A stretch of DNA of 64,000 bases from contig CALSCP010002418.1 of assembly GCA_943704425.1 (NCBI GenBank), positions 39,541 through 103,540 on the forward strand. The letters run 5' to 3'. Below the pieces are notes generated by a model that saw only the letters and a program-made list of their open reading frames with translations, ran no database searches and was not told where the DNA came from. Shown here piece by piece: positions 6,955 to 9,928 of the stretch. The number at the start of each line of letters is the position of its first letter. Within the stretch, counting starts at the first letter, position 1. A program made the position numbers and the translations under genes. The DNA is from Ministeria vibrans ATCC 50519. Taxonomy: Eukaryota; Protista; Filasterea.

Positions 6955-7053
6955 CTGCGTCAAAAAGTTAGTATTAGTCTACTCTTGCATGTTTTATGCC
7001 ATTATCAATAATAATTTATTATTATCAATAATAATAATAATTATTATTATTAC

Positions 7054-7127
<74 letters not shown>

Positions 7128-7157
7128 TTACTAATAGACCCGTTCTTCTTTTTTTTT

Positions 7158-7166
7158 NNNNNNNNN
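7158..7166. other. Assembly gap (further gaps at 17213-17222 and 37692-37712)
   Basis: Runs of N next to homopolymer or microsatellite sequence. Confidence 0.99.
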
Positions 7167-7450
7167 CTGCCATCTTGTTAAATTTCTCCAGAGAAGACAC
7201 CGCTAGCCAACTTATTCTTTTTGATGTTTTGACTTTTGATTCTCATTCTTTTTTGATGTTTTGATTCTCATTCGTAAGGACCAAGAGGACGTCCTTTTTT
7301 TCTGGTTGTTATTGTTTTTTATATTCACGTTGTTGGTATTGTGTGTGCATTGACGGCATTGAGCACACACGAATATCACACAGTAGTGTATTAAGTGTAA
7401 TGATATAATTCTATTTTTTATTACATAGTGCGATGTTCCCCTTCTCACAA

Positions 7451-7533
7451 GCGTCGTTTGTTTATCATCCAAAAGTTCAACTGCGCCTTTTGACATTGCG
7501 CTTTTGTTAAGAACCTTTTCATCGCAACAACGC
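7451..7533 (-). promoter_or_regulatory. SECIS element (type II) in the 3'UTR of the deiodinase-like gene
   Basis: Minus strand reads GCGTTGTTG cg ATGA AAAGGTTC tt AAC AAAA GCGC..GCGC a GTT GAACTTTT GGAT gataaa C AAACGACGC. This gives helix I, an AUGA/GA core, helix II, unpaired AAAA and an apical mini-stem. Confidence 0.8.
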
Positions 7534-7586
7534 AAGAGAGATAGAGAGAAGACACACCCGTCTCACAACACACCAGATGTGCACAC

Positions 7587-7774
7587 TCAACACTGTGCGC
7601 TGAGCCAATCGGCCAATTCAGGCGGATCAAACGTTGCTTCGTCGTTTGGCTGAGCCTAATTATAAAACACACGCATTGTTTGTAAGAAAAATCTTTTTTA
7701 ACATGAGAATAAAAGGTATTTTACTTTGAGTGTAAGCAGACCATCGGCGGAAATGCCAAACCATCTAGAAAAAG

Positions 7775-7805
<31 letters not shown>

Positions 7806-8806
7806 TCAGGGCAAAAGAGAAGTGAGTGACAAAATGTGCGACCGCCTTAACGATACCGAGTAGGCCAGGCACTGTAAGTCTTCTCAAACTCATCGTCAAT
7901 CGAATCCAGCACTACCGACCATTCTGCCAGTCCCTTGAGGTCACACAGACTCGCAATGGCCGACTCAGACCGCTCCTGACAACACAATAATTATCAAAAT
8001 TATTACAATACAATTTTGATATTATGTGTACCTCAATGGTCTTGGCCGTGTGGCGCTTGTAGGCGCTTCCAATGGGCCAGGTGTCTTCTGCGTGCGCCTA
8101 CAGCCGCAATACAATAATAATCATAACACTATCTCGATTCAAACGCACCTCCTTGATGTACACAAAGACAAACGTCGCGCGATGGTGGTACTCGGCGCGA
8201 AGTTGATTGAGCGCCGGAAGAAGACACCGCAATGGGGGTCAGCTAACACATAAATAAAGTATCAGAAAGGTGTAATTACACAATGGGGGTTTACGTGATG
8301 GAGCCGGCCACAAGGACGAGAGGAGAGCCTTTCGTGAAGTGATCTGCCAGCACATGCCGCGAGGTCCCGTCCAGCGAGTAGACGGGAAGGTCCAGTGGCG
8401 CAACCTGACCCTCGACAAGGTCTCCGTCGCGAGCAATGTTTTCCCGGACGTACAGGGGAATGGAGCGAAAGTCCTACGTCGACGCGGCACGTTGGCTCTG
8501 GTGCAATGCACTTCTCTCCACCCTTACCGGCTCCTCTGGAAAGATTTGCCACGCATGACGCAGTACACGCAGTCCGCCGTCCAGTGGGTACACATTGAAC
8601 TCGCGAACGACGCGCTCTTGCAGCCGTACGGTGACGCCGTACCATTCGGAGGTGGCTTGCAGACCGCGGTCCTCGACCGCACGCAACGCCGCAAGATACT
8701 CGTCAGAGTGCCGCAGCTCGTCTTCGCGCAGCAGCATCTCCCGAACTGTATCCTTGTCGAGGTCCTTGGCGCGCCGTCGCGGTCGCACCAACACGTCTTG
8801 CGACAT
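7587..8806 (-). CDS. Iodothyronine deiodinase-like selenoprotein (7 exons, 281 aa, Sec from TGA at 8239-8241)
   Basis: Exons 8806-8528, 8473-8295, 8242-8149, 8097-8032, 7975-7857, 7764-7725 and 7655-7587 are all GT-AG and keep the frame. They give PLVLVAGSIT-U-PPLR...FVFVYIKEAHAEDTWP...VVLDSIDDEFEKTYSAWPTR...ELADWL. Confidence 0.88.
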
Positions 8807-8917
8807 TGTAGGTAAAAAAAAACAATGTCCAATTGTCCATGTTGATTATACTCTGCAGTTCGAATATACATTAAACTGTTACTCAATTACGTTCTTGTGC
8901 TTTTGTTGTTTATTGCA

Positions 8918-9243
8918 ATGCTAAAGGACTTGGTTGCTTCTGCAGCGGGTCTCACTACTTCGGCTCTGTTTGCCGAGGGGCTGTACAACCAAAACTGAAA
9001 CAAACGTCGCAAAATCTGATCGCTTTCGCTGTAGACTTGCCGTCGTCGAATTCCGCCGGACGCAGTCGACTGGCAGCACCCCTGTGCTCCCTTTCATTGC
9101 GCAGGTTGTCCAGTGCCTCATGTGGATGAAATACGGTCTTCTCATTGACGACACGTCCATTGTCTTACCAAACACCGTTGGCCTCCTCTTGGGTCTGGTC
9201 TATCTTGTCTTCTTTGACATGTACGCCAGCAACAGGGTACGTC

Positions 9244-9336
<93 letters not shown>

Positions 9337-9928
9337 ATGTCTTTGTGGTGTGTGTGTGTGTGTGCGTGTGTCTTTGTGGTGTGTGTGTGTGTGTGTGTGT
9401 GTGTCTGTGTGTGTCTGTGTGTGTCTGTGTCATTCGTCTCACCTCCCATCCACTCCTCGTCGCCTTATTACAAGAGTCTGGTGCGGCGGAGCATTCTCAA
9501 AGGTGCTGCCCTTCTCCTCGCAGTGCTCTTCATGGCCCGCTTTGCCGCGCGCACTCGCGACCAAGCAGCATTGCTGATGGGTTATGCAGGCTCCTGTGGC
9601 TCTGTGTCCATGTTTGGCTCTCCACTCGCAGATTTGGTACGCAAATGGTGTATGCCACTATATGCTGAGAGGGACATGATGCACTAATGGCACCTCACAG
9701 AAACGAATGATCTCGGAACGGACCAACAGCGGACTTACTTTCACGCGCGTCGCGTTAAACACACTCGTCCCCTCTCTCTGGACCCTCTACGGACTGCTTG
9801 TCGGCGATCCCTTTGTGTCCTTTCCCAATGCCATTGGAGTCATTTTGGGTCTCATTCAGAGTGCAGTGTATTTCTCCTTTAGAAGCAGTCCCAGTCCTCC
9901 TTCCTCCCTCTCTTTCGAACACGTATAA
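8918..9928 (+). CDS. SWEET (MtN3/saliva) sugar transporter, multi-exon
   Basis: STG..P.LPF...LMWMKYGLL...PNTVG, then MFGSPLADL and LWTLYGLL.GDPFVSFPNAIG, i.e. two MtN3 repeats. Confidence 0.9.
9247..9430. repeat. (GT)n microsatellite in a SWEET intron
   Basis: GT run. Confidence 0.95.

Follow-up and report, generated by a model that had tools for sequence, protein, structure and literature searches.

The window analysed here, a stretch of 64,000 nucleotides from the assembly of Ministeria vibrans (contig CALSCP010002418.1, positions 39,541 to 103,540), carries on its minus strand a seven-exon gene (8806..7587) with one in-frame TGA, and we consider it very probable that this is a genuine gene of the deiodinase-like (DI-like) family in which the TGA encodes selenocysteine (Sec). 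As judged from its sequence, the gene is almost certainly nuclear and functional, its product being a soluble DI-like selenoprotein of ~281 residues with UGA read as Sec.

The exon boundaries were derived on the reverse complement of positions 8860..7400, and the exons were then translated one by one. The coding sequence thus assembled comprises 846 nt (281 codons) and is interrupted by six introns of 54, 52, 51, 56, 92 and 69 nt, with GT..AG borders in 6/6; all exons are open in translation, with the sole exception of the TGA at 8241-8239, which is codon 154 and the predicted Sec codon (8239..8241, minus strand, like all coordinates of the gene that follow). Exon 1 (8528..8806; 93 codons, with the ATG at 8806-8804) corresponds to a predicted four-helix N-terminal domain. 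The thioredoxin/peroxiredoxin-like fold would start in exon 2 (8295..8473; 59 codons plus 2 nt), which ends with ...PLVLVAGSI and the AC of a Thr codon; exon 3 (8149..8242) supplies the last nucleotide of that codon, the TGA and 30 codons (U-PPLR(CLL)...VFVYIKE), and the context of the TGA across the junction reads ...PLVLVAGSI|T-TGA-PPLR.... Exon 4 (8032..8097; 22 codons, AHAEDTWPIGS...) completes the Y-x-x-E-x-H relay motif, the junction reading ...VFVYIKE|AHAEDTWPI.... Exon 5 (7857..7975; 39 codons plus 2 nt) ends with ...VVLDSIDDEFEKTYSAWPT and the CG of an Arg codon (...YSAWPT|R), exon 6 (7725..7764; 1 nt plus 13 codons) reads R-WFGISADGLLTLK, and the coding part of exon 7 (7587..7655; 22 codons, AQPNDE...DWLSAQC) closes with the TGA stop at 7589-7587. 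In a plain list of open reading frames (ORFs) only exon 1 is visible as a sizeable ORF (110 aa), in agreement with an earlier note on this DNA, which had called the gene invisible in the ORF track. The gene structure proposed in the same note, seven exons with the TGA at codon 154, is confirmed by the translation of the exons, by the intron borders and by the colinear homology described below.

Relatives of the gene were retrieved with a length-unbiased HMMER search in which exon 2 (59 aa) was compared with 1.84 billion representatives. Of the twelve matches, the four long ones were discarded, being repeat proteins (TIG, thrombospondin and others) with no relation to the gene. The remaining eight share 49-62% identity with exon 2, end 1-2 residues past the matched region, at AGSYS or AGSIT, and also hold the helical N-terminal region (...MLRRENELRLS...DWMEVT...LQRQVVREFG...). 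A word-indexed search with exon 1 returned no match except exon 1 itself, and single exons gave nothing meaningful against Pfam and PDB, the pieces being too short. Two more searches yielded 25 C-terminal fragments, every one with PF00837 and none with a name, and 22 N-terminal fragments, all of them labelled 'hypothetical' and all (22/22) stopping at AGS[YI][ST]. Overall, more than 30 relatives with the same architecture are present in metagenomes and transcriptomes. At the protein level they end without exception one residue before the TGA, and the public ones are all stored as two 'hypothetical' ORFs broken at that codon, which is the kind of splitting by automated annotation that had been anticipated. 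A homologue with Cys in place of Sec was not found, though the search for N-terminal fragments admitted lengths up to 381 aa.

Nine of the related loci (L021-L029) were read as DNA, and 9/9 have an in-frame TGA at the Sec position, flanked on either side by conserved sequence; the claim that the TGA of the window gene occupies a Sec position is thereby upheld. In two of them (L021, L022) a truncated gene is directly followed by a second called ORF annotated as PF00837, and the DNA reads as one uninterrupted frame, ...AGSYS-TGA-PPMR...VYILEAHAQD(Q/E)WPI...AWPLR.... Four others (L023, L024, L025, L026) are intronless, have a GC content of 28-36% and show the same uninterrupted frame through the TGA. 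The same in-frame TGA is found in a transcript-like contig with a GC content of 60% (L027, Logan SRR28082851), while the last two loci (L028, L029; GC 44%), reading AGSIT-TGA-PPFR...AHAEDEWPIGS, are very near the window gene.

The homology extends over the whole gene and respects the proposed introns. When the N-terminal halves of three relatives were compared with the window by tblastn, they aligned over 8761..8294 (E from 3e-21 to 5e-20) with a single gap, placed exactly on intron 1. Past the TGA, the C-terminal halves of relatives matched 8238..8062 (E = 9e-7 and 2e-3), with an alignment gap that corresponds to intron 3, and 7915..7853 in exon 5 (E = 3e-4 and 5e-3). We also built hidden Markov models (HMMs) from the relatives only and tested them on the 2,265 stop-free six-frame segments of the 64-kb window. 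The segments of exons 1 to 5 were the only significant ones, with scores of 51 bits for exon 1, 72 for exon 2, 12 for exon 3 past the TGA (E3b), 15 for exon 4 and 19 for exon 5, and in the C-half profile E3b, exon 4 and exon 5 occupy the colinear positions 3-24, 25-45 and 72-90. Exons 6 (13 aa) and 7 (22 aa) are too short for a score of their own; in the multiple alignment the tiling continues with R|WFGISADGLLTLK over ...(WPV)RIYVID...LTYK and AQPNDE... over ...(YK)AQPSE... of the relatives. Since the exons of the window tile the intronless relatives with continuity at every junction, all six junctions are supported.

Two details of the gene structure are reported here for completeness. A 10-nt sequence, ACCCCCATTG on the gene strand, is repeated directly and exactly at 8230-8239 and 8281-8290; one copy lies 4 nt into intron 2, the other starts at the A of the Sec TGA and extends into exon 3, and their spacing of 51 nt may be compared with the 52 nt of intron 2. 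This repeat may be the trace of intron gain by local duplication, and it leaves the gene model unchanged. At the other end of the gene, the terminal stop is itself a TGA after ...SAQC, past which the frame continues with VCTSGVL before another TGA (7563-7592, minus strand). A second Sec at the end of the gene (C-U-V-C) is conceivable; against it, a comparable C-terminal extension or Cys pair is found in none of the relatives, and the core of the candidate Sec insertion sequence (SECIS) described below lies merely 64 nt past this terminal TGA.

Having located the TGA, we turn to the family of the protein. The C-terminal halves of relatives score 48.9 and 68.9 bits on the Pfam model PF00837 (T4_deiodinase), whose cut-off is 27 bits. 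A profile of the C-halves of the clade, in which the exons of the window were entered as separate rows, matched only mouse Dio3 and Dio2 in PDB at E<=0.01 (Dio3, 4TR3/4TR4, E = 5.5e-17; Dio2, 9H48, E = 1.2e-16). The alignment begins with the PP next to Sec and runs on to the C-terminus over ~125 residues; in it, the PP of the window gene falls on residues 58-59 of the 4TR3 chain, which immediately follow the Sec position (Sec170 of Dio3). The thyroid-hormone deiodinase signature claimed in the earlier note therefore holds. The residues of the deiodinase relay are known to lie in Ser-x-Thr-Sec and Tyr-x-x-Glu-x-His (S127, T129, Y157, E160 and H162 in Dio2; PMC11592359). The corresponding S, T, Y, E and H are all present in the window gene (G-S-I-T-U and V-Y-I-K-E-A-H), and the Arg of ...WP-x-R... 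is aligned with the Arg of ...FER... in Dio3. Two observations tell against this assignment. Taken singly, the short exons of the window have no match to Pfam T4_deiodinase, pieces of 13-59 aa being too short, and a six-frame scan of the genome with PF00837 picked up only a paralogue, the C1890 gene described below. The second relay His (H182 of Dio2, His219 of Dio3) is also not clearly conserved: its position aligns to a non-His residue in the clade, and the window gene has a His 1-2 residues away from it. Because its own exons miss PF00837 singly, the membership of the window gene is transitive through its relatives; on this basis of sequence comparison its place in the deiodinase/DI-like family is established.

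By homology to Dio2 and Dio3, the catalytic domain would keep the proton-relay residues of the deiodinases (Ser and Thr ahead of Sec, then Tyr-x-x-Glu-x-His and the WP-x-R arginine), and the selenolate would most likely attack an electrophilic atom of a small substrate, giving a Se-X intermediate to be reduced by thiols. Our leading guess is that a halogenated aromatic would be reductively dehalogenated, a peroxide or a sulfenyl compound being the alternative substrate, and by analogy with the known enzymes we put dehalogenation forward only tentatively as the specific chemistry. A finding from a different branch of the family weighs against it, as the DI homologue of Dictyostelium is dispensable for DIF dechlorination and is not the DIF dechlorinase (PMC3205185). 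The window gene could instead, and this is a serious possibility that stops short of being a probable one, encode a Sec enzyme of deiodinase fold that acts as a peroxiredoxin-like peroxidase or a thiol-disulfide oxidoreductase. The deiodinase fold is itself a peroxiredoxin-like thioredoxin fold, sharing with the 2-Cys peroxiredoxins of the AhpC type an N-terminal beta module and a nucleophile that sits where helix alpha-1 begins (PMC11592359), and selenoproteins of thioredoxin fold are mostly redox enzymes (PMC7539508). In the same direction point the lack of conservation at the relay His219 equivalent and the fact that the organism is not known as a maker of iodothyronines. On the other hand, the PDB profile search retrieved, at E<=0.01, Dio2 and Dio3 but not a single peroxiredoxin, Pfam AhpC-TSA was not matched either, and the motifs retained (S-x-T-U-P-P, Y-x-x-E-A-H and the Arg of WP-x-R) are those specific to deiodinases.

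The N-terminal part of the protein sets it apart from the animal enzymes. Exon 1 is highly charged and contains no hydrophobic (transmembrane) anchor; its AF2 model (pLDDT 88.8, pTM 0.78) consists of four helices, at residues 18-32, 35-47, 51-69 and 75-88, and in an alignment with eight relatives the positions M, L, E, R, S, E, W, Q and F are invariant. According to this model, exon 1 is a soluble four-helix domain that stands in place of a membrane anchor and is conserved in the clade, which agrees with the soluble helical region described in the earlier note. Since the N-terminal transmembrane anchor is missing, the gene should not be filed as DIO1, DIO2 or DIO3. The domain corresponds to no Pfam family, and structural comparisons of the model gave a best E of 1.9 in Foldseek and a best Z of 5.6 in VIA-align, within the helical background; a lead from the ESM Atlas ('Protein C10', 0.83) was below threshold and without Pfam support, and was rejected. 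The domain probably either replaces the dimerisation (oligomerisation) that the membrane anchor mediates or binds partners in the cytosol. In some relatives further domains precede it: a ZZ finger in the EukProt transcriptome sequence P0011 (PF00569, 39 bits), two ubiquitin-like (UBL) domains in L027, and in P0061 (JGI, 341-kb contig) one ubiquitin-like domain (a precomputed PF00240 match) with, behind it, a ZZ-like cluster of Cys and His read by eye. It is possible, and we would not claim more, that these sequences form an undescribed DI-like clade of diverse microbial eukaryotes (GC 28-60%), all-Sec so far, defined by a four-helix N-domain with no Pfam or PDB relative and including some UBL/ZZ fusions.

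Reading the TGA as Sec calls for a SECIS element, and folding together with a rule-based scan identified a candidate of type II in the 3' untranslated region (3'UTR), at 7451..7533 on the minus strand. In this hairpin helix I pairs 7533-7526 with 7458-7451. The AUGA core (7522-7519) lies in an internal loop and begins 64 nt past the stop. Helix II (5' strand 7518-7506, 3' strand 7481-7471) has 11 pairs over 13 nt, and it is followed by an unpaired AAAA (7505-7502) and by a mini-stem of 4 bp (7501-7498 with 7486-7483) that closes an 11-nt loop. The 3' side of the core is GGAU, with the GA at 7469-7468 and a bulged G at 7470. The layout is that of type II, and the core, UGAA/GGAU, conforms to the published consensus UGAN/KGAW (PMC3753652). 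The left boundary of 7451 given for the hairpin in the earlier note matches the folded element 7533-7451.

Several comparisons bear on the specificity of this candidate. Within the 3'UTR the rule-based scan found no other. Under the KGAW rule with 9 pairs or more, 10 hairpins were found in 128 kb of strand (~1 per 12.8 kb), and among dinucleotide-preserving shuffles of the 187-nt UTR a rule-passing hairpin appeared in 17/600, and one with at least 11 pairs in 5/600 (p = 0.008-0.028). The same rules recovered the layout of (A/G)UGA, 12-13 nt, AAA(A), mini-stem and GA downstream of the GPx (C1971), SelK and SPS2 genes of the same genome. Among the relatives, L028 has a textbook element of this layout 37 nt past its stop, and L023, L025 and L026 have the same layout ~20 nt past theirs; for the latter three RNAalifold gave a consensus that comprises helix I and the core loop, a helix II of 11 bp bulged once on its 3' side, the A-rich bulge and the mini-stem. 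In a more diverse set of SECIS candidates, the 3' strands could not be aligned with MAFFT.

Other results count against the hairpin: in fold energy it does not stand out from shuffles (z = -0.65), the G at 7470 is bulged right beside the core, an Rfam search of the 3'UTR gave no match at E<=10, and a covariance model (R1) built from the SECIS candidates of three AT-rich relatives did not match it with default filters. With the filters off, R1 returned just two AT-rich chance matches elsewhere than the hairpin; this model is clade-specific, with an effective sequence number of 1.5, and its negative is a weak one. As for Rfam, its SECIS models also gave no match to the GPx and SelK candidates in 401-base searches with identical settings, and SECIS_1 had zero matches in the whole 29.7-Mb genome; because these searches are blank as well, the Rfam blank for the 3'UTR is not discriminating. 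The one exception was L023, which alone showed, where its element had been predicted, a weak match to SECIS_5 (17 bits, E = 2). The Rfam SECIS models thus have a blind spot for this lineage, in that they miss the best SECIS candidates of the genome, which matters for screens of protist genomes. There is some precedent for such failures in Sec-using fungi, where SECISearch3 found a SECIS for 5/16 bona fide selenoprotein genes (Mariotti and colleagues, 10.1101/314781).

Provided that the gene is real, we judge with good confidence that the hairpin 7533-7451 is its SECIS. The description of this element as a canonical-looking type II SECIS just after the stop is justified by the layout and the UGAN/KGAW core, but with its bulged G and no covariance-model match the element does not count as verified. 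There is a modest residual chance that the gene is a genuine selenoprotein gene whose working SECIS is not this hairpin but another part of the 3'UTR or a variant particular to the lineage. The silence of the covariance models, the ordinary folding energy, the bulged G, the occurrence of rule-passing hairpins in 0.8-2.8% of shuffles and at a rate of one per ~12.8 kb of strand, and the fungal precedent can all be read in this sense, as can the failure to find a SECIS for the second DI-like gene of the genome. Set against these are the consensus core, the absence of any other rule-passing hairpin in the 3'UTR, a layout and a near-stop position like those in L023, L025, L026 and L028 and in the GPx, SelK and SPS2 candidates, and the uninformative nature of the Rfam blank. 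Farther downstream, at window positions 7000-7170, there are an (ATT)n/(AAT)n microsatellite tract and an 8-N assembly gap (7159-7166), ~290 nt from the SECIS candidate; the sequence does not show where the 3'UTR truly ends.

The earlier note had proposed to look for the Sec machinery in the genome, and the search of the 29.7-Mb assembly found tRNA-Sec, SepSecS and a Sec-containing SPS2. The tRNA-Sec is nuclear (L001:1501-1597, 97 nt) and scores 55.3 bits against an Rfam gathering score of 47, SepSecS is represented by five exon matches over the cut-off, and SelD/SPS2 scores 137 and 93 bits and has its own Sec-TGA in ...LKG-U-GCKVPQEEL (L010, G000:C216, TGA near 1037). A SECIS candidate for SPS2 lies ~220 nt past its stop (2584-2639 in L010), of type II with a GUGA core, d = 13, a CAAA bulge and a 3' UGAU. 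eEFSec could not be singled out, a point against the proposed decoding: the bacterial selB model, which does not tell one GTPase from another, gave generic GTPase-level matches, none of them over the cut-off. ARAGORN missed the nuclear tRNA-Sec and reported as 'tRNA-SeC' a 73-nt tRNA with anticodon UCA (L003, G000:C1523:828-3897), a candidate that we rejected. It lies on a mitochondrial contig (GC 22-27%) with ATP9, tRNA-Asp, tRNA(UCA) and tRNA-Gly and is the mitochondrial tRNA-Trp. UGA therefore stands for Trp in the mitochondrion and, as ARAGORN's tRNA(UCA) is mitochondrial, there is no sign of a nuclear suppressor of UGA.

Other genes of the assembly also have TGA at known Sec sites. Two GPx genes have it in the motif NVA(T/S)x-TGA-G, reading NVASK-U-GRT and NVATY-U-GET (L017, C1971, ~1500-2080; L014, C2371, ~1500-1700). 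A well-formed type II SECIS candidate with an AUGA core belongs to the C1971 gene (2472-2531); for the C2371 gene the rule-based scan gave no convincing SECIS, only a doubtful AT-rich candidate. A third GPx gene (C1837) has no in-frame stop. The N-terminus of SelK (MVYISGGEVRRSRP...FLKSMFQ) was found on the minus strand of L018 (C1735), with a SECIS candidate downstream (forward coordinates ~506-455; AUGA, 12 nt, AAA, mini-stem, GA). Finally, the genome contains a second, canonical DI-like gene (C1890; L011, G000:C1890:120672-123860, ~1018-2127 on the plus strand), which reads ...LLNFGS|YT-TGA-PPYR...IYIIEAHPSDGW (IIEAHPSDGW)...RPERLYVLRN... and matches PF00837 directly, with 34.7 and 28 bits; the rule-based scan gave no convincing SECIS downstream of it.

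In the light of established Sec biology, expression of the window gene would proceed as follows. With the six short introns spliced out, the mRNA would carry the UGA of codon 154 in the context G-S-I-T-U-P-P of a peroxiredoxin-like thioredoxin fold, and the type II SECIS hairpin would lie in the 3'UTR ~450 nt downstream of the UGA. The hairpin would recruit SBP2 and eEFSec carrying Sec-tRNA(Sec), and UGA would be read as Sec instead of stop. It is very improbable that the TGA is a true stop, in which case the locus would be a decaying pseudogene or would encode a truncated protein of 153 residues. The terminal stop of the gene is also a TGA, and the public gene calls of all relatives do end at the Sec-position TGA; but past this codon the window gene has four further exons with intact GT..AG borders and a frame that stays open and conserved for 127 codons, the same TGA with conserved downstream sequence recurs in nine loci with GC contents of 28-60%, the truncated product would lack most of the thioredoxin fold, and both Sec machinery and a SECIS-like hairpin are present. 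The least credible reading of all has UGA standing for one of the standard amino acids, Trp or Cys, by way of a suppressor tRNA or a variant of the nuclear code, since the tRNA(UCA) reported by ARAGORN that might suggest it is mitochondrial, TGA terminates the window gene and the relatives L021 and L022, the other in-frame TGAs seen in the genome sit at the known Sec positions of SPS2, GPx and DI, and a bona fide tRNA-Sec and SepSecS are present.

DI-like selenoproteins have been known in protists since 2007. They are established in Dictyostelium (PMC2375036), in a chytrid, invertebrates, protists and bacteria (10.1101/314781) and in algae (PMC7539508), and in this respect the find is less new than the earlier note implied: protist, fungal, algal and bacterial DI-like selenoproteins are an established family (PMC2375036; 10.1101/314781; PMC7539508). 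With the non-vertebrate members, such as the Dictyostelium didA homologue, the DI-like protein of Gonapodya prolifera, algal DIO and bacterial DI-like proteins, the window gene shares Sec in a deiodinase-homologous thioredoxin fold, hosts without thyroid hormones, UGA at the deiodinase Sec site and, with the qualifications given above, a type II SECIS in the 3'UTR. The C1890 gene of the same genome is a typical member of this group (NFGSYT-U-PPYR...IIEAHPSDGW), whereas the window gene belongs to a separate branch, marked by AGS(I/Y)(T/S)-U-PP(L/M/F)R and VYI(L/K)EAHA(Q/E)D-x-WPI; unlike its C1890 paralogue, which has no four-helix N-domain, it carries this conserved domain, and its exons are too divergent and too short for a six-frame PF00837 search. 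A non-exhaustive literature check found no paper on this branch, and its specific N-domain, its all-Sec status and its UBL/ZZ fusions may be undescribed, within the limits of that check.

Compared with vertebrate DIO1-3, the window gene has in common S-x-T-Sec, Y-x-x-E-A-H-x-x-D-x-W, the region of the loop-D insertion, the Arg of ...P-x-R-(I/L/F)-Y... and a UGA-encoded Sec with a (here candidate) SECIS in the 3'UTR. It differs from them in having the predicted soluble four-helix domain instead of an N-terminal transmembrane anchor, in the relay position of His219 (Dio3), which is not clearly conserved, and in that no Cys could be aligned next to Sec or at the position of Cys239 in Dio3. Iodothyronine is not to be assumed as the substrate.

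On the other side of the gene, a divergent neighbour at 9078-9233 on the plus strand encodes an MtN3/SWEET sugar transporter (PF03083, 53 bits), and is followed at ~9240-9400 by a long (TG)n microsatellite that is apparently intronic.

The gene is a worked example of how a selenoprotein gene is lost by standard annotation, with more than 30 relatives stored as two unnamed halves split at the Sec codon. In its corrected form it adds one selenoprotein to the selenoproteome of the organism, beside SPS2, two GPx, SelK and the canonical DI-like gene. For the question of what deiodinase homologues do where there is no thyroid hormone, the soluble, all-Sec branch, with its conserved helical domain and occasional fusions to ubiquitin-like or ZZ domains, gives concrete constructs for expression and assay. 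If the proposed clade is real, its architecture would suggest that a selenoenzyme of deiodinase fold has a role in the cytosol, bound to partners or linked to the ubiquitin pathway, and would offer a handle on what DI-like proteins do outside vertebrates.

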